From Marsupella aquatica (Eukaryota; Plantae; Marchantiophyta): DNA of 64,000 nt. A program made the translations under genes and the position numbers. Every line of letters starts with the position of its first letter. Position 1 is the stretch's first letter. Positions 12,890 to 38,750 of the stretch are shown piece after piece. Below the pieces are notes generated by a model. The model saw nothing but the letters and a program-made list of their open reading frames with translations, searched no databases and was not told the origin of the DNA. The stretch covers positions 767,573-831,572 of the forward strand of contig OZ316899.1 of the NCBI GenBank assembly GCA_973895155.1, in the 5' to 3' direction.

Positions 12890-12985
12890 TGTGATGCCTA
12901 GCCAGGAATCACTAAGCCCGGTTTACATGGTAAAGCAGGAGTGTACCCTGGAAACACCTTAGTATAGGACCAAAAACAAGGAAAA

Positions 12986-12991
12986 TATAAA
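12986..12991 (+). promoter_or_regulatory. Candidate TATA box upstream of the LTR-embedded ORF
   Basis: AAAATATAAA-N-AATTAAGGG is conserved between this copy and the diverged inverted copy, ~280 bp upstream of ATG 13268. Confidence 0.4.
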
Positions 12992-13267
12992 CAATTAAGG
13001 GTGACTATGGAACCCGGGCCGAGGCCGGAAGTAAGGACGCCGGGGGAGAGAACACGATTAGGGTTAGGGCGCGCTAAGCGTCGGTGGCTAGGGGTGACCA
13101 ACGGGAGGGGAGACCAGAGGAGGAGAGGGGTAAGGACCGCTCGCGAGGAATAGTGGCTCATTTGCAAGAACAAACTGGGCAGATGACTACGGGAGGCCAA
13201 ATGCTGTCAGCTGCTTAGACAAGCACTCGGGGTGGGAACAGATACCAACGATCGACTCAAGGAGGGT

Positions 13268-16200
13268 ATGAGCAACGTCAATCAAGCGGCACATTTTTGG
13301 GGATGCCTGTTTGAATGGGCAGGTGAGTACATCAGGACTTACGAGGACGAAGAATTGGAGAGAGTAGCTCGAGAACGGCAGGAGCTCGCTCGGCTCTGGG
13401 AACTGCAGAAGATGGCTTTCTTAGGAGGAGAACTTATCAAGGCCGAGTTCTTGTGGACTCCTACTGCCAATCAGCTCAACGACCTTCTATTTTGCAAAAA
13501 CAAAATCGTCGGCATCCGGGAAGCCATAAATCGCTGCAACAACCTACGCTGGCAGTTGAAGGGTAACACGGAGGGGTGGAAAAAGGCAACCTTGCTAGGA
13601 GAAACATCCACGGCAGCCGAGATGAAGAGGAAAGGAAACAACAATGAAGAGGCCACACCGGCAAAAAGAACGAGGTCGGCGGCACCTAGGAAGCCAGCAG
13701 AGCAGCAGAGCAGGACAAGGGGAGAAGCCGATGAGGAAGAGGTTGATCCCATCAATGCCATTCCAACAAACGATGACACCTGGAAAGGCTGGGCGGCGAC
13801 CCTACCGGAGGAAGTGCAATTACACTTTGCACGGGAGGAGGATGCATGCTTTACGGCCATGCAGACCAAGAAGTACCAAGGCTTCATGGCCGGATCCGGC
13901 TTGGAAGCCTTCGTAAGATTACCATGGCTGAAGCCGGAGGTGCCGAACTCAGACTTATTAGAATTTGTGGGATCATGGGAACCCGAGACCAATTCCACGA
14001 GGGTGTATGGGAAGGATTTCTATCTCACTCCCCGAGTGATTGCTGAGGTGTTTGGCTTGCCGATGGGTAATAAGACCAAGGTTGATACCAGGAAGACCTT
14101 ACCTGACAAGGAGTTCCGGTTGTTCCCAGGACCATCAACAAAGAATGGCTTCTTCCAGAATATCTGCACCAACCTGCACATCGGAGAGATGATCAATTTC
14201 TTGCAAGTGACCATGCACTGTAACTTGCCGACGGCAGAGATCGGCAAGGCTCAGGTCTACCTGGCAGAAAGGCTAGACCCAAGCCGGGATTACAACGGGT
14301 ACCTCCTCAACCAACTGAAGAAGATCTTGAAGGAGGAATAGCAAGTGATCGGCGTGGGAAGCGTGTCCCGACTTGGCTATCACATGCCGCTGTTGTGCCG
14401 GTATGCCAGAAGTCAAATCTTTGCCCCAGTACTTCCCCTATCGGCAAGGGCACCGGAGGAGGTCCCAGAGCAGAGGCCGGCACCAGAGAAGCCCAACCAG
14501 CCCGACAGTCCAACGATCAAGCAGGTGTTTAGGCCAAGGAAAGAAGACTTGCCGATGCAGCAACCAGGCATGCAAAATCTGTTGAAATTGCTGGAGAAGG
14601 AAAAGAGAATGGTTCCGGCAACGGCAACGGACGCTGCCCCAGAAGTCGACCTAAGCCGACTCAAAAGGGAAGACTCCTTTACCTGAACCAAGGAGAGATT
14701 GAGGCCGGAACACAAGCCGGGAGTGCGAATGTACGTGGGAGCCTCAAGCCCCAAATCAGAGGCAGAGGAGCCAGGAGTCCAAGTAGTGGAGGAGGCGGTG
14801 GAGGACTACAGCAATGATAACTTCGGCTATGGGTCGGATCATCATGTTCCAGGAGTAAGGACCTGTGGCCGATTTATCCCCACACTTCCAAGAGTAGTTC
14901 GAGGGGACCCCACCCAGCAGAGTAACCCCGAGTCTCCCCCACCAGAGGTTGCTCCCCCGAGCTTTGACGGCATAAAGCAGACGGCACAAGAATTTCAGGA
15001 GCGACTTAGGGAGGAAGAGAGAGCAGCCCTGGCTAGGGAGAAGGATTTACCAGGAGGAGATTGGCCGGAGGACATCAGGCGGCTTGCCAAAAAAAGAAGC
15101 AACCCTCTTGCCACCGTAGAAGAAATCCGCAAGACGGCTTGGGAGCAGAGGCCGCGGTGGTTGATGCCGATGACTTCTAGTTACTCCACCTATGCTAAGG
15201 ATAGAGCCATGGAGTACGGGGAGATGTGTGGGGACCTGGCGCTCAGCATCTTTGGGGAGGAGTTGGAGCAGGGACCCTTTTTCCAGAGGGAGATGTTGGA
15301 AAAGCACCGATTAGAAGAAGCGATGGCTTTGGAGAGAAGCAAGAAGGACGAGGTCATCCGACGGCTTAGAGAGAAGGAAGCCAAGGTGGAAGACCTGCAG
15401 GTGGCCAAGGAAGCCCAAGATGAGTTGTGGATTAAGCGGCATGAGCTAAACATCATGCAGGGGCAGTTGGATACCGCTCAGTCTGACAATCAGATTATCA
15501 AAGATAAACTGACTCGGACCCAAGGAGAGTTGGCCGGCGCAGTCAAGGAGAGAGAGAAATGGAAGCGGGAGCTAAGGGATGCAGAGGAAGCCCACTTAGC
15601 AACCAACAATTGAGCCATGGCGGAGACTCAAAGAAGGGAGAGGGCGTTGAAAGGAGAGCTCAAAGATATCCGCGGAGCCCTTGAGCAGAAGGAAGCAGAG
15701 TTAGGGAAATCCTATCAAGGGATTATTGCGTTGAGCAGGAGCTTGCGTCCCTGACGGCCAGCTTCAAGGCCAACTTGCATGAAAAGGACGACCAGCTCGA
15801 CCGGACTTATGCCAAGATGAATAAGATGGAGTCTGTGGTCGTCGCAGAGCTCGACAAGGAGCTAAGAGCAACCCAGGAGGAGAGGGCTACCTTGAAAAAA
15901 GAATTGGAGGAAGCCAATAAGGACCTGGAGGAGGCGCGCAAGGACTTGGACGAGACCCAGGAGGACTTGGAGGAAATCACAAGGAAGATGGAGAACCTAC
16001 AGCGGCGGGCCGACAACCAAACAGAGCGGCTGAAGACCCAAGCCGCAGTATTTAAATGCTGGCTTCATCAGGTCCAACTCCAATTGGGGGAACCCAGTTA
16101 CCAGGGGTAGTATTGGCCGAAGGACAAGCTGTAACACTCACCCCGGTGCCGGAGGTAAGTGGCAAGGGGAAGGAACCGGCTGTCGAAATAGGGAAGAAGA

Positions 16201-16580
16201 AGAAGCGGAAACCTTCTAGGTCTGGGAGTTATACGGCTTCTCAAGCCGTTGTGACCGAGAAGATAACCCCAGCACCAACCTCCGGCATCGGCACGGCGGT
16301 GGATCCACCAGTCCTAGGAAGTGGAGATGGCAAGGCCGAGGCCGGGAGAACCAGTAATGTTGCCGAGGTACCGGATCCTCCACTAGAACATACCGGGGAG
16401 GCCGTAGCCGTAGCAGAGGCCGTGACCGATGCTGAGACCGAGGCCGATGGTGGACCCAGTCAGGCCGATGAAGAGTTGACTTGGTCAGGGGCAGGTAATC
16501 TATCAGAGGACGGACCAACGACAGTGGCTGCGGAGGAAGCGTTGGGGGCGTCCATTGAGGACCAGCCACCGGTGTCGTGA
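13268..16580 (+). pseudogene. ~1,100-codon accessory protein: N-terminal helical domain, basic NLS-like segment, Athila-ORF1/Transposase_32/PMD-like domain, long coiled coil, acidic tail
   Basis: ORFs 13232-14341, 14345-14686 and 14699-15613 are in one frame, separated by single stops that are sense codons in sister copies. Two 1-bp deletions (~15735, ~16060) shift to 15775-16110 and 16056-16580. The domain family assignment is by motif resemblance only. Confidence 0.75.
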
Positions 16581-16839
16581 CGGTGTAAGGGCGCCGTCCC
16601 TTTTAGGGAGGGCGGGCGTGGAGGTAGGAGGCGTGAGTGGGCAGGGCGGGCGCTGATCTCCAAGTTTAGACTTAGGATCAGGATCAGGAGACGGCCCTGA
16701 CACTTAGATTAGTGGGATTTTGGATCCACGGGTGTGGACGACACTTGTGCTCCTGCCTCGCTGTACTTAGGTAGATTACAGTTAGGTAGATTATAGTAGA
16801 TAGATTAGGCTTACGCTGCAAGGAATCAGGCGGATCCAC

Positions 16840-16864
16840 AACCCTAAACCCTAAACCCTAAACC
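16840..16864. repeat. Short interstitial telomeric repeat (CCCTAAA)3 inserted in one copy
   Basis: ATCCAC[AACCCTAAACCCTAAACCCTAAA]CCAGGATA versus ATCCAC[TG]CCAGGATA at 9571-9586. Confidence 0.9.
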
Positions 16865-17525
16865 AGGATAAGTACCTGGGCTGCGGGGAGTTCAGGGCCT
16901 CTTCTTTAGCAAGTTTCTAGTTGCACCAGCAGGGCTGGGATCAAGTAGTAAGAGAAGCTCTCGGTTAGTTATACAGTGACCCTTGTGTATATTCATGTTT
17001 CCTCATACTTAAGAACTGAATAGAGTTGGCCTCACGGCCTAGTTCGCAGAGCTTGTGTATGAGATGTACTGTTTGTATGGCAAGTGCATGGTATAACTCA
17101 GTCAGAAGGAGTCATTTTGCTATTTGTGTGTCGCATTAACTTGTGTGAAGAGTGCCCACATCAACTAATAGAGGAATAGAAGTAAGCAGGGGAGTGAGAG
17201 TTGGATGTGTCGAGCTGAGAGAGGTCTTAGCGGCTTAACCAAGCCAATTGGGGATCATTCTGGCGGCGGAATCCAAACATACCTAATGGAAGACCAGGAG
17301 AGGAATACAAGGGAGGGACTAGAATAGGCCGACTAAGTATCTCATGACCCGATGAAGGATCTATCCAGTATATGTGTGTAAAATGTTAATAGAAGTAGTT
17401 GAAGGAGAGTTAGCAACGTCCCATGCCGCTAAACTGCGAAAACGGCCTCGCCAAGGACGAAACCTGCGGGAATCGACTTGAGCAAGGGGGTTTCTTGGGT
17501 TTGGGGAGGCAGGGGACGCACCACA

Positions 17526-24203: not shown

Positions 24204-25053
24204 TGTCGTGCCGAAAGATTTCGGCTCATGAATGGCTTTTATAGGGGATGATGGGCGAGGACTCTCGGTTGGGTTGCGTGCATGCTGACTCGGAGGGGCT
24301 GCTTGGTTGGATGGATTGAGGTTTGGCAATTGGGTGACTCGTCGTCACCAGGTTTGGTGTTTGGGTGAGTCACCAGGCTTGGAGTTTGGATGAGCCTCGC
24401 TGCTGGCAACTGGCTCAGGCTGGATGGTTGGGTTTCCGATGCTACTTAAGACTTGAGCCTTGCCTCATTGAGGTTGGCGGTTGTCTATTGAGATCTGTTG
24501 AGTTGCGTTCTGTGAGTTTCGCTCCGTTGTGCGGAACTCGACTCTTGTGCGACGGTTTTGGAGTTCTGAGTGAGTTTTCAATCCAGGTGGGGAGTTTTTG
24601 ATCCAGACGGGGAATTTCTTGAGTCTGGAGTCTCGTTGATCCAGGCGGGGATTTCTCGAGTTTGGAGTCTTGTCGATCTAGGCGAGGATTTCTCGAGTTT
24701 GGAGCCTCGTTGGTCCAGGCCCGAGTTCCGTGTGAGCTGTTTTAGACTAGTGGAGTAGCTAGTCGAGTTTTTGGTTTTGTGAGTTAAGGAAGATAGTTTT
24801 TCTGTCAGATTTTGAGTAGTTAGTCACTCGAGGAGTTCTACCCAACAAGTTAGAGGTAGCGGCCCGCCGTAGGGCCAGCTACTAGACTCTTGCGGGCAAG
24901 CTTACTCGAGGGCACCTATTGTAACCTTTGTGAGAAAAGTAAAAAATATAAAGGAGTGAGAGTTCACTCCGAAAAGTGCTTGTCACCTGTCCCGATCGCA
25001 GCCAGAAATGCGTAGTTTGCCAGAGGAGCCCCTAACTTTAAGTCCTCGCGACA
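24204..25053 (+). repeat. 5' LTR containing ~37-bp tandem subrepeats (GATCCAGGCGGGGATTTCTCGAGTTTGGAGTCTCGTT) at ~24579-24722
   Basis: Direct alignment with 28330-29179. Confidence 0.92.
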
Positions 25054-25094
25054 TTGGCAACCATACTGGGGATTCCTTGGGGCGATTGGATGAG

Positions 25095-28000
25095 ATGGGT
25101 GACTATGACGAAGTCGATCGGATATCGAGCATCGTCATGTCGATGATGAGAACCATAAGGAAGGAAGAGCTTGAGTCGGAAAGGGCAAACAAGGAAGCGA
25201 ATAGAACTACTCGGTGTCTCCAAGAGGTTTTGAAGGAGAATGGGCAGTTCGATGGGAGAAATGTGACAAGCTACCTTAAGTCTTACTTGACAGAAGTAGT
25301 TGTCTACAAGTTGGACAAAGGGACAGCCGTGAAAGAGTTCATGGTGCTGGTTGAGAAGGAGTTGAGTTCGACGGTGCGGACCATCGTTGAGTCAGCTGAG
25401 GGCTGGGATGACTTCGACCAGAAGATGAAAGAGGAGTTCCAAGCGGAGGATGTTGATCGGGTCACGCAGGCTACCTTCTTGGATTGGGTGAATGATAGGA
25501 ACAAGAAGCTGAAGGGGCCGCAAGAGCTCCTAAGGGAGTTCAAGAGAAGGGTGTCTCAGTTACCAAAGCGGGATGTGGGAATCATCAAGTTGCAGCGCTC
25601 GACGCTCTTCTTGAGGGCAGCCGATGAGGACCTTCGAGAGGAGCTTGAGAACGCGATGGAGCTGCTGGAACCTTTGAGAGTTACCTTGTCTAACGAGTGG
25701 AACCAAGTTGAGAAAGCGGTGTCAAAAGTGAGCAATCGACACCGGCGGCGAGAGCTAGACAAGCAGGCTACCACTCTCGACCTAAGGCCGTCGGAACCGA
25801 TATTGAGGAAAGGGAAGCGAGAACCAGTGAAGGATGAGATCAAGCCATCGATGGATGATCTCGCGGAAATGATGCAGAACCTAAAGATCTTGGCAGCACA
25901 TGCGGTCGAGAATCCAAAATTGAGGGTTGCGAGTGCTCCCAAGAGGAAGCGAGAGATGCAGAGTTGGCCATGCATGTGGTGCAACAGCAAAGAGCATGAT
26001 AAATGGGAGTGCCTGGACCTGAGGGAAGCTGTAGATAAAGGGCTGATCAAGTTTGTCGGTGAAGTTGGTCAGAAAAAGATATCGTTTGCCAACACTGAGG
26101 AGCCAATTCCATTCAACTCCAACAAGGGAGGCATGAAGGCTTTGGCTGAGAAGCGAGCTGGGAAGCAAGTCGAAGAGGCATCCTCTTCGCACCTGGAAGC
26201 GAATGTTTACAATGTGGAGTTGGATGGCCCTGTGACAGAAACGGACAAGTTTTACAAGCGCTTGGTGGATCTGGTGTGAGAGAGAGATGGAGTGACCCGG
26301 TGCTGATCAATGCGATAACGGTTGAGGTTGGGGCTAGTTGGGATGCCTCGGTTGAGTCAAAAAGGAAGAAAACCGACGAGGATGACACTCCGTCTCAATC
26401 AGGGGAACAAGAGAGGCAAGATACTCGAGACAAGGAAAGGAGGGTTAGGTTCAAAGAAGACGAAATGAGCGAGAAAGAGCCAGAGAAAGGGAAACCGATT
26501 AGGAAGGACCCGGGCTGGGTGCTTGGCAGGGACGTGGACCAGGCCATGTACCCGGAGGTTGTAGCTGAGAAGTTCTGGAGCCAACAGGCTCAAGGGTTTA
26601 CCAACGCCAAGTTCTTTGGTAGTATGAGGCGGGAGATCTAGGAAGCAATCTTGGAGAGATCCAAGAGGGAACGGATTTACAAAGAGGGCCCTCACACCTT
26701 GATGGGGGAGGCTGGCGAGACGGAAATTGGGAGTTTCCGAACTTACACTGTTGGGGTGTCCATGGGTTCAGGTAGTAAGCTTGCTGGCCCCGAAGAGTCA
26801 GATTTGGGGGAACCAAAGAGGGTCAAGTCCCTTGAAGAGGAGCTCATGAACTTGGACGATGAGTTCTTTGATGTGGAAGAGGACCTCATGGGAACCGGAA
26901 GCGAAGCTGAGTCTGTGGCAAACAGGGACCCGACCAAAGGGGGAGAACGGGAAAGCATTACCGCACAGTCGAGGACCATTCATGTCATGGGCTCAATGAA
27001 AGGAAACGATTATGCTTACCGAGATGGATACTGGGCTTGAGCAAGTCCGGAGAGCGAGTGCCAGTTGGAAGGAATGGAAGGCAAGGTGCGGGCGCTCATT
27101 GATACTGGCTCGGAGATCAACTTGATGGATCCAAAGGTGTTTCAAAAGGGGAATTGGCCGGTGGACAATGAGTTGCTTTGGAGTGTGAACTCGGTGAGTT
27201 CAATGAAGGACTATCTTTGGGGCGGATGTCCAAATGTGATGGTGAAGTTCGGGAATGTCAAGCAGGCTTGTAACATTTTTGTTCATGAGCACTTGTCGTT
27301 TCCGGTGATACTGGGCATGCCGTTCATCACTGAATGGAGGATGGAGACGAAGGTTCTGGATGATACTACCTTCATGGTGAAGGTTTGGGGCAAAGATGAT
27401 AAGGAGGTGGTTCAGTTTCCGACGGTTCTACCTGGAAATGAGAGGAACCAAAAGCAGTTGCGAGATCCAATAGCGGCAGAAGTTGGCATTGCTATGGGGG
27501 AGAACCGAGATGCTAAGATGGATCTAAGTGCAAAGTTCAAAGGGGAGCCAATTGCGGACCAAAAGATGGGGAGTCTAGTGTTCAAGGAAGAGTGTTACTC
27601 AAGAGAGCTACTGGACATTGGGAAGTACCTGAGTGACTTTGGGAAGCGGCTGAAGCAGGATGGTAAAGAGTTCGAAGACATTCGAGTGAATTCTGATAAG
27701 TTCATTCTTAGAGAGGGCTACCTTTGGCGGAAACCTAAGGGCCCCATGCTAGTACCGAGGAGAGTTGTCGATTCTAAGGATGAGCAAAAGCGGATTTTGG
27801 AGGAAGTCTATGATGCTGAGGTCAAAGGTGGTTTGAAAGGAGTAAGGGCAAAGGTCTGTGAGCGGATCCAAAAGGAGTATTGGTGGCCAGATTTGTATTG
27901 GGATGTTCAGGAGGATGCTGACAATCGAGGGATCCATCACAACTTGAAGAGGCAGATTCAAGAGCTTGATCGGATTGACTATCGAGTCGTTGACATACGG

Positions 28001-28204
28001 GAGAGAGTGAAGGTTTGCAAGGTGCGACCTAGAGATGGAATGGACTCAAGTTCCGACTTGAGTGAATTTGAAGACGAGGCACTGGTCCAGGCGCATCAGT
28101 TGGACTTGAGTTTCGAAAGTGGCTTGATTGGTTCTGATTCGGATGAGTTGGACTTTGAGTTTCTGGAAAGTGGAGTGCCTAAGGCCGAGTCTGAAGGTGT
28201 TTAG
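25095..28204 (+). pseudogene. gag: gag (zinc knuckle + DUF4100-like segment), aspartic protease and relic integrase zinc-binding region; RT, RNase H and integrase core absent
   Basis: FDGRNVTSYL gag start, CMWCNSKEHDKWEC knuckle, ALIDTGSEINLM protease, EGYLWRK...EQKRILEEVYD...YWWPDLYWDV relic. Frameshift near 26276 and stops at 26639 and 27038. Confidence 0.8.
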
Positions 28205-28329
28205 GGTTTAGGTTTGAGTTTCTTGAGGAGGAAGTGGTTCAGGCGCATGGCTCGAGTTTGGACTCAGACTTAGAGGAAATCTGATGGATTGGAACAGACC
28301 GGAGGCTGCTCAGGTTTACTAGGGGAGGA

Positions 28330-29179: not shown

Positions 29180-32165
29180 TCGTTGAGAACAAGCTTGCAT
29201 CCACATGTCAGAGTCATCCAAGTGCAACACCTCACCAACCTCCCTTTGAATGGCTGCTGGCAACACTAGCTCCCTATCATAGAGCAATAAATATGGTGAA
29301 AAGGATGCAAGAGATGCTTGCCTACTGAATCAATATCCCATCGCTAACCATGGTAGCTGGATATCCCAATCATTCACATGACCCTTCTGCAAGCCATTCT
29401 TCCGCAATCCTCTCTTTATAGTATGGACAACTCTCTCTGCCAATCCATCTGCCTCTAGATGATCCCTAGACGTTGTACGGTGATCAATCAATGCTTGATC
29501 ACACAAGGCCTGAAAATCTCCACAAAACTCAATCCCTTGGTCAGTCAAAACCTCAGTAGGAGCACCAAAGTGGCTCAATACACGGTCCAGAAAGGCATAG
29601 GCAACTCCTTCACTACCTTTATCTAGCAATGCAACCAACTCAATCCATTTAGAAAAGTGCTCCACCATCACTAAGGCATAACGGTTTTGATGTCTAGTCA
29701 GTGGTAAGGGTCCAGCAAAATCTAAACTCCAACAATATCCCAAGCCCATGATTGGCAAGAGATGCAGATGCGGGGTAGGAGCATTAAATGATGCTCTCAC
29801 TCTGTCACGCACAGTACACCGCACCACAAACTATTGCACCTCAACATGCATTCCACGCCACCAATATTGGGTCTAGAGTAAGTTGTATGTCCACTTCACT
29901 CCAAAATGTCCAAGCTCTTCATGAGCATGTCACACCAATTGTGCACGCTAGGATAAAGGAGGTACCAATTGCACCCTGCCATCATCCCAAACTCTCAACA
30001 AGTGAGATCCTTCCCATCTAAACCTCTTAGCTTGTTGTAGGATCCAATTTCTCTCCTTGGCAGTCACCATGCCTGACATGCTGTCTGTGCACAGATACAT
30101 CACAACATCTGCATCATCATAAATATCATGTCCAATAGACTCCTCACTAGAAATCTCTGGATCCACAAAGTCTGCATTGGGCCTCTCCAATGATGCCATT
30201 GCACCAAGACCATCCACACTCTGCAACAAGCACAAATAAGCAGAAGCATGCCAACTTGGCACCATCTCCTTGTTTGCCTCATCGTGCCAACGTGCTCCTG
30301 TCAAATACCTCTGGCTTGGGCAGGGATTGCGACTCAATCCATCAGCATCCTGATGTAAGTGACCAGGTCTATGCAAGACCTCAAAATCATACTCCTGAAG
30401 TATGAGTGGCCAACAAGCAAGCTTACCAGTAAGCTTGTCTGACTCCATCAACCATTTGAGTGGTTGGTGATCCGTAACAAGAGCGAAGGGGTTACCAAAC
30501 AAGTAACATCGAAAATGAGCCACTGCCCACATTGCAGCCAAACATTCTCCCTCATAGGAGCCATACTTTGATTCTGTAGTGTTATTCGATTGATTGGCAT
30601 ATGCTACCACAAACTCCCTTCCCTCATCATCCTGCTGAGTGAGCACTGCTCCAAGTCCCACCATGCTCCAATCAGTATGCAACCTAAATGGACGGCCCCT
30701 GATAGGTCTCCTCAAGATGGGCGTTGATGTGAGCTTCTCCTTCAACTGATGGAAAGCTCTATCCTGGTCAGCACCCCACTGCCACTCATGGTCCAGTCTT
30801 GTAAGTAACATCAAAGGTTTTGCAATTGCACTGAATCCTTTCAATACCTTTGGTAGAAGTTTGCAAGCCCCAAAAATGCTCGGACTCTACTCACATTTGT
30901 AGGCTGAGGGATGCCAGCAATTGCCTCCACCTTTTTCTGCTGCACACCCAATCCACTTGGATAATGGTATGCCCTAAATATGCAATCTGGTCATGGAGAA
31001 CTTACATTTTCCAGGATGCAGCTTCAATCCATGCTCTCTCAACTGCTCAAACACCTACTGCAAATGTATAGCATGCTCCTCCACAGTGTCACTGTACACA
31101 ATAATGTCATTGATATAACATTTGGTAAAATCCAGGTCTGCCAAAATCCAATCCATGACCCTTTGAAACTCAGCTGGCACATTCTTCAATCCAAACGGTA
31201 AGAATAGCCACTGATACAACACATCCTTCCCATGAGCATCAACCCCCCAAAATGTTGTCTTCTGCCTGTCACCAATCCTAATAGGCAGTTGGTGATATCC
31301 AGTCCTGAGATCCAATGTGCTAAACACTCTCGCATGCCCAATGGCATCAAATATCTCCTTTGGTGTGGGCATGACATACCTGTCAGACTTAGTCTACCGA
31401 TTAATTGGACAATAGTCTCCACACATCCTCCTATCAGTCCAATTGCCATGCATATCCTTCTTTGCTGGCATCACAGTGGCAGAAGCATACTCACCAAATG
31501 ACTTCTCCACAAGTCCTGCTGCCAACAAATCCTGGCACCTTGCCTGAATCAGTGCCCTCTCCATATCGGAATACCAATATGGTCTCCAAAAGATGGGCGC
31601 ATCAACTGCCAAATCTATCCGGATGCCTGGTCCCTTTAACATGCCCAAATCCTGCATGCTCAAAGCAAAACAACTTCCATAACTCCGTAAAAACTGTTGT
31701 ACACATCGTCTCTCACCTCCAGTGATCTTGGGGCCAATAGTTGGCTCCCAACTGTCAATGGTAACCTTGGCAGAAGGTGTAGAGAACGCCAACTGTGGTT
31801 GCTATGCTGCAACCTCAGGAGCAGCAATACCATGCTGTTGCAAAAAAGAAAGCCCATTGGCCTCTCCATTGACTCCCCATGAAGTCCAGGGATGACGATC
31901 TGTGGCACTGTTGCCCCCTGCTTTGAACTCTAAGGACCCAAGAGAGGAAGAGCATCCATGTGGAGGTGTCACAGATGATTGTAACCGGCGCTGCTCTACC
32001 AAGGCTAAACTCACAATCTAAGTCAAACAATTAAGATCCATAGCCTGACCCAGAATTTGACGGCGTGCTGCTTCAGTCACTGAGGGGATTGTTGTGGGGC
32101 AAGTCTGAAATTCCATAGCACGCTCACACTCATCAAAAGTCACTAGTAGAAACTGGGGCAATTTA
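29180..32165 (-). pseudogene. pol: Gypsy pol (RT, RNase H, integrase core), decayed and 5'-truncated
   Basis: RRMCGDY, LDLRTGYHQ, LPFGLKNVP, YINDII (YIDD decayed), LHTDWSMVGLGAVL, TDHQPL, SLDFAGP, LTDQG, DGLAER. Confidence 0.92.
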
Positions 32166-32408
32166 GACCATACCTTATAGGACTAAGCCCACTAAGTCCT
32201 TCTTCCATACTTTAAACGACTCGCATCCATTGCCAAGGTTTTGTTAAAGACTATAAAAGACTTTGAATGTTTCCCGGTTTAGTTAAAGACTATGAAAAGT
32301 ATACTTGCTATTTTGTGAAGGGTGAACACTCTACACATCATGGATTTTATTCTTGGAATCCACAATAAAGGTCCACACAAAGACTAGGACACTCGATAGT
32401 CTTACAAG

Positions 32409-32553
32409 GGTTCATCATAAGAAGTGTACTTCAAAAGGACCGGCCGACGTGCTACATTTTGGCCGCAGTGCTTAAGGAACATGCCTTGTATATATCACCA
32501 ACGTTAACTAACATTGCACCGTAAAGATCCATGTAACAGGTACTTTTCATAAC
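32409..32553 (+). repeat. Left copy of a ~144-bp direct duplication flanking a LINE insertion
   Basis: Matches 32917-33060 with about 6 differences. Confidence 0.9.
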
Positions 32554-32574
32554 CCTAAACCCTAAACCCTAAAC
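32551..32574. repeat. (CCCTAAA)3 telomeric repeat at the LINE 5' junction
   Basis: AACCCTAAACCCTAAACCCTAAAC between the duplicated target and the LINE sequence. Confidence 0.9.
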
Positions 32575-32916
32575 TCTGTGAAGCCTCGGGTCCCAGTAGA
32601 AAACATACTAGATTACTGCGAGTCAAAGAATTAGTCCGTCAGGAACGTCTTAGGTGGGTTACTCGTCCAGACGCATGGCTTTTTAGTTGAAGCAATACTT
32701 GTTTATGCATTCTACTTTAGTTGGCTAGGAACACTTCTTTTGCCTTTGCACTTAGGTGCTCATTATGGCCTCACCTGGGTCACACTATGCTGCCCACGCT
32801 TATGTTGCCCTATTGGGCCCCCCTTCCCGTGGGTTTTCGCGGGTTTCATTTTTATTTCAAAAGAAAAAAAGAAAAAAAGAAAAAAAGAAAAAAGAAAAAA
32901 GAAAAAAGAAAAAAAA
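32574..32916 (+). mobile_element. 5'-truncated LINE copy related to the element at 1-2918, with a G(A)6-7 tail
   Basis: Encodes LCEASGPSRKHTRLLRVKELV...AWLFS* versus ICEASGPSRKHTRLLRIKELV...ARLYS*. Shares 3' motif CCTTCCCGTGGGTTTTCGCGGGTTT. Confidence 0.92.
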
Positions 32917-33060
32917 GGTTCATCATAAGAGTGTACTTCAAAAGGACCGGTCGACATGTTACATTTTGGCCGCAGTGCTTAAGGAACATGCCTTGTATAT
33001 ATCACCAACGTTAACTAACATTGCACCATAAAGATCCATGTAACGGGTACTTTTCATAAC
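32917..33060 (+). repeat. Right copy of the ~144-bp duplication
   Basis: Matches 32409-32553. Confidence 0.9.
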
Positions 33061-34763
33061 TTAGGGTACTTTTGATAGAGGTAATTCCATGAGGGGGGCC
33101 CGGAGGGGGGGGGGTAGGGTGGGGCACAACTGATTAAGTGGCCTCATACTTGAACAGAGAGGGATTTATTTAAAGTTATCCTTTACCCTCACCCAAATGT
33201 ACTCATTTGTTGCCTAATTAAGTCCACATTGTTCCCCTACATCAAGACTCTGGCCAGGACTTATCAAGCCTAACGGCTCAACTCAACGGAAACGGGCACT
33301 CGATTAGCGTTTAGGGTCCTGTTTGCACTAAGTCTTGGGTTAGGGTGAGTATGCTTTGGTCATTGTATCAAACTGGGTTTTTGTGAAGGGAACTATCGAG
33401 TGTCCGCGCCTCAGGCGTTTGGGCCCCATCATTTGTGCTTTGCGACAGAACGACCTGCTTCATGTTTGTGAGTTTAGCATACGAGCAGAGTTTAGGGTAA
33501 GCATAAAACTCCTCAAACTGGCCCATTGTTCATTGAAACCCCACATATTACCCACCGGCACCAAGGGTCCAGTCCCAACCCGTCTTCCGCTTCCCACCAT
33601 CTTCACTCTCTCGCGCATCTATCTCCTGAACGGCGTCGCTGGCCCTTAGACGCAGAATGCTCCGCTGTGATATCGCCTCCAACTTTTCTAGTGCAGTCTA
33701 GGCAATTAGACTGCTTTTGAGAAAACTGCCCTTCTTAAAAGTGAGCAATACTAATAAACCTCGGTAGGGGCGGAGCTGGGCGGAGCTGTGGGTACTGAGG
33801 GAGCTGGGTGTGAGGGTTCGTTACGATGGCCGTGGACCTACCGTGGGCTATGAACAAGAAGCCTTAAAGGGTGAGTAACAAGCCCAAACTCTAAGCACTC
33901 TCGTAAAAAAATTGCAGAAACAAAGAAAATGGCAAAAAAGTGGCCAAAAATACTACCTGTTTTTTGACAAAATTATAAAACAAACTGAAAGTATTAAAAT
34001 GACACACTTTTTTCACCATCTCCTAATTACAAAATGATCTCAACTTACTTTTGATAAAATTACTACCTATAATTTTACTATGCCATTTTAGCAATTTTTA
34101 CCAAAACATGATTTGTATTTTTAACAAACAATCAAATTACCTCCATAATTCATTAGACTTGGGAAAAATTCAAATTCATAAAATATGATCTCTTTTTGAC
34201 TCTCCAACATGCGCCCCTTCACTCTTTGAGGAAGACTTTTCAATGGAAGATGATATCTCCACAAATTCACCACCTACGCTTCCAGATGTACCCGTTTTGG
34301 TCCAAATCAGATCACTCAATGGCTCCTCTTTTACTCTCAACCTGGCTCTCAACATGCCTGAGTTTGATTTGTTAGGCAACATCTGAATTTCACAAACATA
34401 TTGACCCAACTGGGCTCCCCCAACCTCTTCTTGGGGACCTCTTCCAAATTCTTATTCTTCCCCTTCAAGCTAATTTCTTGATATTGATTGGCTTCCAATC
34501 TCAGCCAAATGATGCAAGTGTGCCCGGGTGACCTTCTTGTGATGATCCTTTCCTTGCCGGAATTATTTGCAGCCTCAGTAGGTCTTCTTGTGTCCCCGCT
34601 TGTGTCAGCGCTCTTACACCTTCCTGGAATTTGAGAGATGTCAGACGACCATATTCACTCTCTCCCCTTGGTGCTTGTTGCAACGCTTGACCTTTCCAAA
34701 ATGCACAAAAATCTGGTTTTGAGACAGGACTTAGTGTTTTTAGAAACTTGTTACAATCGGTCT

Positions 34764-38011: not shown

Positions 38012-38039
38012 CTAAACCCTAAACCCTAAACCATAAACC
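38012..38039. repeat. Short degenerate interstitial telomeric repeat
   Basis: CTAAACCCTAAACCCTAAACCATAAACC. Confidence 0.7.
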
Positions 38040-38750
38040 TGCATCCTTTTCTAGTGTCAGGGGGGATCATAGCCTCCAGCCATACCTTGTGGCAGGCCTG
38101 GTCAAGATGGTGGTCTGTACTTTGTTTGCTTTCTATTGGCATGTTGACATTTGCTCTTGGAATGATCCCCGAAAGCTCCATGAGCAGTTTATGTTGAGAA
38201 TTCAGTTTATGTTGTTGTTTCCGTCATATGCAGCTTGCATTTTTGAATATATGTCCTGTCATTGATGATAGAGGGTGGTTGAGAACGGTTTTCTTTCTTC
38301 TTGGCAGTGGGTCAGTGTGTTCCCATCTTCCTGGAGCCTTGTCTGCTTTCTGCCACCGCCTAGTACCTGAGGTCTGAGTGGCATCGAGAACAGGGTTGGT
38401 ACCCATATCTCACCTGGTAATAAGGTGAGATATCTGATACCGCTCTCACACCTGCATAGCTGTGCCTATGACTATACATGATTGGACTCCAATATGGTCA
38501 TGGGTGTGCATGCAGAGGCGGTACATTTGAGGACAGCGGAGGAGGTGGTGACACCCTCCAACATTTAGGAATTTTGTGTCATTCACTTGAAAATAGGTAC
38601 ACTACTCAAGAACCTATTTTTTTCTTTTGGGGTGGTTTAGGGTTTGTGTACATTTATTACACGTTATGTTAACTCTTTTGGCAGATACAGTTAGGGATAT
38701 ATGGAACACAAATACCACCATTAGGCATCCTTGTTCATTGCTGTCCATGA

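Follow-up and report, generated by a model that had tools for sequence, protein, structure and literature searches.

The window that we analysed, 64,000 nucleotides of contig OZ316899.1 from Marsupella aquatica, contains a locus that is very probably the product of one LINE insertion event with telomeric filler, the telomere repeats lying between the truncated 5' end of the element and its target. The order of parts on the plus strand, obtained from sequence reading, repeat finders and self-BLAST, is target copy, telomere tract, LINE 3' end, tail of the type found in this LINE family, and target copy. Together, the 5' truncation, the family-type tail and the flanking duplication form the signature of one LINE insertion, which these observations support, and none of the four constituents (duplication, tract, LINE match, tail) is due to chance. 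Telomerase is our leading candidate for the maker of the filler, a choice that we hold tentatively.

The left target copy (32406-32553, plus strand, 148 nt, firm from 32409) ends in CATAAC at its 3' end and is followed by the telomeric filler (32551-32574, plus strand), which Tandem Repeats Finder (TRF) describes as a period-7 repeat with 3.4 copies and 100% matches. The LINE part, also on the plus strand, begins within ORF2 and comprises its last 38 codons and the stop codon (32574-32690, delimited by tblastn and DNA alignment) and a 3' UTR (32691-32858) with a conserved box of 25 nt at 32822-32846. A G-interrupted A-rich tail of the form (GAAAAAA)n occupies 32859-32913 of the same strand (TRF period 7/8, 96-97% matches), and the right target copy (32914-33060, plus strand, 147 nt) completes the arrangement. 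This layout had been claimed in the initial annotation, and it was borne out by our reading of 32100-33400, by the repeat finders and by self-BLAST, with two adjustments of length. The 343 bp attributed there to the LINE 3' end include the 55-nt tail, leaving a LINE body of 285 bp, and the flanking duplication, which is real, is 145-148 bp long and not ~144 bp.

The C-terminal match and a common 3' UTR box indicate that the insert derives from a LINE with a reverse-transcriptase ORF2. A related LINE copy, its 5' end cut by the window, lies at 67-2920 on the plus strand and consists of ORF2 with RVT_1 and zf-RVT domains, a 3' UTR and a tail. Its ORF of 877 aa (67-2700) matches Pfam RVT_1 at 2e-28 and zf-RVT at 1.7e-13, the usual domain pair of plant L1-type LINEs. 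Positions 32574-32687 of the insert encode the last 38 aa of ORF2, with 73.7% identity to residues 840-877 of this ORF (tblastn, E 6e-11); the stop codon of the truncated LINE follows at 32688-32690, and a 3' UTR of 168 nt then runs to ~32858. The 25-nt box within this UTR is identical to ~2851-2875 of the related copy, and a hairpin with a 7-bp stem and a 4-nt loop is predicted inside it (32826-32843 and ~2855-2872). The hairpin is the same in both LINE copies, which are otherwise 70-80% identical, which leaves no covariation to be seen, and its folding gives weak z-scores. Situated just before the tail, box and hairpin are candidates for a site that the LINE reverse transcriptase recognises. 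The related copy also carries a similar G-interrupted A-rich tail at 2880-2920, and in the insert the tail directly abuts target copy 2, as is found in LINE insertions.

Rfam and ARAGORN returned no Rfam or tRNA match in the region 32000-33500, and the insert is therefore a truncated LINE and not a SINE, the region containing no tRNA-like or other known RNA. Both a SINE/tRNA head and a telomerase-RNA fragment in the insert were rejected on the same grounds. Among protein sequences, a word search with residues 560-877 of ORF2 scored nothing, and a word search with the last 200 aa of ORF2 recovered one Logan protein (P0001, from a public read assembly) with 47% identity. A metagenome scan with a conserved 21-mer of the LINE 3' box gave only one match, which is a chance match: positions 127-147 of Ga0157380_10334054 (L001), a GC-rich, bacterial-looking contig that is unrelated to the LINE.

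The duplication that encloses the insert is a direct repeat of 148 and 147 nt (32406-32553 and 32914-33060) with 95.3% identity, the firm part of the left copy being 32409-32553. The final A of the tail blurs the left end of the duplication by up to 3 nt, and the length of the duplication is therefore given as 145-148 bp. The two copies differ by six substitutions, all of them transitions and mostly at CpG, and by one indel of 1 nt, a pattern that fits an old duplication in methylated DNA. An assembly artefact was rejected in view of these seven differences and their pattern of CpG decay. Target site duplications (TSDs) of LINEs are usually about 7-20 bp long. A direct repeat such as LINE insertion produces is thus present at the locus, but at 145-148 bp it lies far beyond the usual range, which means that part of the event is non-standard. 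It is pure speculation that the ~147 bp between the breaks correspond to the DNA of one nucleosome. An exact-pattern scan of JGI metagenome contigs for the uninterrupted target, with a target 24-mer, gave no match.

A perfect (CCCTAAA)3 is found at 32553-32573, and TRF extends it to 3.4 perfect units at 32551-32574; the 7-nt periodicity begins in the AAC of the target and extends to the first C of the LINE part. The overlap by AAC between the repeats and the end of the target, which had been described in the initial annotation, is real by this TRF span. Only ~0.003 telomere tracts of at least 14 nt are expected by chance in 64 kb. The tract consists of perfect TTTAGGG-type units, TTTAGGG being the telomere unit of bryophytes (PMC6410037) and hence presumably of this organism.

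On the evidence of two LINE relatives and of target copy 2, the tract is foreign to both the LINE and the target. In the related LINE copy the homologous position (2565-2590) is ordinary coding sequence with no telomere repeat, and P0001 likewise has an open coding frame across the junction position, so that the tract is absent there from two relatives; this was the check that had been proposed for a possible origin of the repeats within family members. In addition, (CCCTAAA)3 read from the sequence contains a stop in all three frames, so that a family member with the tract at this point, 114 nt ahead of the ORF2 stop, could not be functional. On the basis of these stops and of the two relatives, we rejected the tract as a part of the LINE. 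The target provides an internal control, since copy 2 runs into TTAGGGTAC and not into CCCTAAA; it follows that in the uninterrupted site CATAAC was probably not followed by the tract, and on this control a tract already present in the target was rejected as well.

The orientation of the filler is also as it had been described: read on the first-strand cDNA, the repeats are TTTAGGG and form its 3' end, and they lie exactly at the 5' junction. On the cDNA (bottom) strand the order is LINE ending in ...CACAGAG, then TTTAGGG x3, then target, and the G-strand thus continues the 3' end of the cDNA. To our knowledge, a G-strand on the cDNA with its 3' end away from the LINE is the only orientation that telomerase can produce. 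The G-strand prolongs a 3' end that was present at the break, as is expected of a telomerase-mediated insertion, and the orientation is that in which a telomere would cap the chromosome fragment on the right. Microhomology is found on the target side of the tract and, less clearly, on its LINE side. On the LINE side the register extends over 1 nt strictly (G) or over three of four positions (AGAG against AGGG); the boundary between LINE and tract can be set only to within about 3 nt, since the nearest relative has no more than 70-80% identity. On the target side, the AAC-3' end of the top strand is complementary to GTT of the tract.

Taking these features together, our preferred account, a tentative one, is that an L1-like plant LINE retrotransposed once, long ago, into a decayed gypsy element and that the end of its cDNA was extended, most likely by telomerase. 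The order of steps and the enzyme are what we infer from the anatomy. From the contact of the tail with copy 2 we locate the first nick on the bottom strand, at the left end of the segment that was duplicated, and the priming site with it; the nick site, as read from one complete junction, would be about CCTT/GTAA. A bottom-strand nick at this position would accordingly have freed a 3' end, and this end would have primed reverse transcription on the A-rich tail. Synthesis of the cDNA would have halted after only 285 nt of RNA, and the 3' end of the first-strand cDNA (...CACAGAG-3') would then have gained TTTAGGG x3, the likeliest agent being telomerase with AGAG, which is partly in register (compare AGGG), as its seed. 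Through GTT/AAC, the resulting ...GGGTT-3' end could have annealed to the ...CATAAC-3' end of the top strand, provided by a second break ~147 bp downstream. Second-strand synthesis would have started at this AAC-3' end, and fill-in of the two long overhangs would have yielded the duplication of 145-148 bp.

Individual steps of this account have precedents. In mammals, telomerase-made interstitial tracts as a rule start from 1-4 nt that are in register (PMC2246262, PMC7215372), and the same applies to healed ends, among them those of the truncated LINE-like MoTeRs in Magnaporthe (PMC7367193). Experiments have shown that 5'-truncated L1 insertions are closed by NHEJ/MMEJ, with microhomology, small tandem duplications and templated insertions (PMC11702581). 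The template of Arabidopsis telomerase RNA is 9 nt long, CTAAACCCT (PMC6765143), and the tract measures 21-24 nt; on an Arabidopsis-type template it would therefore require repeat addition and not one template pass. The same figures, together with the lack of a telomerase-RNA flank in the insert, disfavour a further suggestion of the initial annotation, a jump of the LINE reverse transcriptase onto telomerase RNA.

One feature of the junction speaks against a simple action of telomerase. A primer ending in AG, placed canonically on an Arabidopsis-type template, would give GAG-GG-TTTAG, which differs from the observed sequence, and the observed register would need the primer to pair with one internal mismatch. 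The locus had been called a direct footprint of telomerase. The orientation and the microhomology fit that description, but it is too strong for one locus, so that the earlier account is partly supported, its structural reading being sound and its attribution to an enzyme going too far. A broader version, in which telomerase regularly closes breaks linked to transposable elements in this organism, seeding TTTAGGG on free 3' ends, including those of stalled LINE cDNAs, before end joining, is conceivable and at present doubtful. Under such regular action of telomerase, this locus would be a case with an unambiguous substrate, namely a retrotransposition intermediate. In that case, telomerase may have been drawn to the site with the help of a telobox-like cluster beside the target.

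It also counts against telomerase that a copy of any (CCCTAAA)n RNA or DNA would look just the same, and short tracts occur elsewhere in the window (16840-16864, 38012-38032). The filler of a single LINE insertion could thus have been copied, either by a LINE reverse transcriptase that switched to (CCCUAAA)n RNA or another tract-bearing RNA, or by a theta-type repair polymerase using a telomere or an interstitial tract, and we regard this as possible though rather unlikely. Template-switch chimeric LINEs have foreign sense sequence 5' of a truncated LINE within one duplication (10.1101/2025.02.02.635956), L1 junctions show templated insertions (PMC11702581), both junctions of the present insert have microhomology, and possible nearby donors with three perfect units exist, for example 16840-16864 in a large LTR. 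Copying requires, however, that entry and exit both fall in pure repeat, with no non-telomeric donor bases on either side; no donor RNA body was found in the insert, pure repeat alone lying between LINE and target. Moreover, C-rich telomeric RNA is hypothetical in this organism, the template of telomerase RNA would be too short (9 nt in Arabidopsis, PMC6765143), and captured DNA could take either orientation, yet the one compatible with telomerase is seen, which amounts to one bit of evidence only. The tract might instead have been joined to the LINE already in a chimeric source RNA. A truncated LINE would then have stood beside telomere repeats, because it was subtelomeric, because it had been healed like fungal MoTeR relics or because it lay behind a telobox promoter or 5' UTR, and a read-through (CCCUAAA)n-LINE transcript would have been mobilised in trans through the 3' box and hairpin, with 5' truncation within the repeat. 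There are documented cases of truncated LINEs that carry telomere repeats at the point of truncation (PMC7367193), and an identical box and hairpin in two diverged copies fit a recognition of the 3' end that permits mobilisation in trans. Nevertheless, we consider a chimeric source improbable: it requires two rare events, self-BLAST finds no second copy of the junction CCCTAAA-CTCTGTGAAGCC in the window, and it leaves the in-register microhomology on the LINE side unused.

Two further explanations dispense with extension or copying at a LINE cDNA end. Break repair by end joining could have captured a ready-made fragment, composed of a telomere seed, the LINE 3' end and the tail, with sister-chromatid or fill-in synthesis making the 147-bp duplication; interstitial telomeric tracts at breaks are indeed sometimes accompanied by target duplications (PMC2246262, PMC7215372). 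The fragment stops, however, exactly at the LINE's own tail where this abuts the duplication, which is the hallmark of tail priming and is not to be expected of a random fragment, and capture is for us a very improbable origin. We judge it highly improbable that the events were separate, with a 147-bp tandem duplication arising first and the LINE, the tract or both arriving later at its exact junction, and no particular observation favours this course. Such an arrival would have to hit one base in ~147 without a short duplication of its own, none being seen at the LINE edges, and the tract sits exactly between target and LINE.

Among known systems, telomerase-made interstitial tracts (Nergadze et al. 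2007, PMC2246262; Santagostino et al. 2020, PMC7215372) resemble the locus in having a few perfect units at a break and, occasionally, target duplications from staggered breaks. In those cases the extended 3' end is chromosomal DNA, whereas here it would be the first-strand cDNA of a LINE; the present host is a plant with TTTAGGG repeats, no telomerase-RNA fragment lies beside the tract, and the ancestral state is read from target copy 2. Chimeric LINEs such as U6/L1, Alu/L1 and others, which are formed by template switching or RNA ligation (10.1101/2025.02.02.635956), share with the locus a foreign sense sequence, a truncated LINE, one duplication and a LINE tail. They differ from it in that the foreign part is here pure telomere repeat with no recognisable RNA body and in their shorter duplication, which is typically 10-30 bp, about one tenth of the present one. 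MoTeR relics (PMC7367193) are likewise non-LTR elements that were truncated at the 5' end, received telomere repeats there on seeds of 1-4 nt and later came to lie at an internal site. In contrast to our LINE, MoTeRs target telomeres and bear telomere repeats at their 3' side too, while the 3' side here consists of an ordinary tail and a target duplication at an internal site within a gypsy element. Elements of the TRAS/SART or MoTeR type insert into telomeric arrays and have telomere repeats on both sides; at our locus the repeats are confined to the 5' junction, with unique target sequence on the 3' side, and a telomere-specific LINE was rejected for this reason. In the case of Morrish et al. 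2007 (cited in PMC2246262 and PMC11702581), L1 reportedly inserts independently of its endonuclease at dysfunctional telomeres, where the 3' overhang of the telomere primes L1 reverse transcription. The locus is similar in that LINE cDNA is physically joined to telomere repeats, a cross-talk of two reverse-transcription systems, but there the repeats adjoin the L1 tail and here they adjoin the truncated 5' end, after cDNA synthesis.

Two known kinds of structure, LINE junction filler and telomerase-made interstitial tracts, would thus be combined at one site. LINE reverse transcriptase and telomerase are relatives, and the meeting points of the two that we know of so far are LINEs priming on chromosome ends and telomerase patching chromosomal breaks. 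If our preferred account is correct, a telomere tract on an aborted LINE cDNA would represent the reverse hand-over, in which telomerase or a telomeric template acts on a retrotransposition intermediate, and the telomerase-made interstitial tracts of mammals would be extended to an early-diverging land plant. In-register CCCTAAA at the 5' junctions of LINEs would moreover be a signature that can be counted across whole genomes and put to the test in the telomerase mutants available for bryophyte models. A single old locus is an anecdote, and its value hinges on further cases of this signature.

With regard to the genomic context, the LINE insertion sits in degenerate sequence upstream, in the sense of the minus strand, of a decayed gypsy-type pol (29330-31792, minus strand) that is recognised from its ORFs as pieces of RT, RNase H and integrase (RT_RNaseH 1.6e-32). 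On the gypsy strand all frames of the target are full of stops, so that the target offers no protein handle for finding paralogues, and of ten ORFs near the locus that were looked up for exact matches, none is in the protein collection. Telomere-like 7-mers occur in the window at chance level (47 against 44 in shuffles), while tracts of at least 14 nt exceed chance; apart from the junction tract these are 16840-16864, 38012-38032 and 28199-28212.

Just to the right of the duplication, four G-strand telomere-like 7-9-mers lie within 33061-33498 on the plus strand (at 33061, 33309-33317, 33340 and 33490-33498). This cluster spans 440 nt, with a naive Poisson P of about 6e-5 that was calculated post hoc, and two of its members are contained in a direct repeat of 22 nt (33296-33317 and 33477-33498). 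On the minus strand the 7-9-mers resemble telobox motifs. The tract at 16840-16864 is a second perfect (CCCTAAA)3, 25 nt long in phase, inside an LTR-like unit of 4.6 kb (12890-17525). With the junction tract of the LINE it has 24 identical nt in common, which is trivial for in-phase repeats, and it is a possible RNA or DNA donor. The 14-nt G-strand tract at 28199-28212 (GTTTAGGGTTTAGG) lies exactly at the end of an ORF of 379 aa (27065-28204) and ~120 nt before the segment 28330-29180, which repeats 24204-25054 at 96.6%. Finally, 38021-38033 and 38633-38645 form a perfect inverted pair of 13-nt telomere-type sequences (AAACCCTAAACCA and TGGTTTAGGGTTT) that are 599 nt apart; the left arm belongs to the telomere-like tract of 21 nt at 38012-38032, and such a pair may indicate a small element or a regulatory region.
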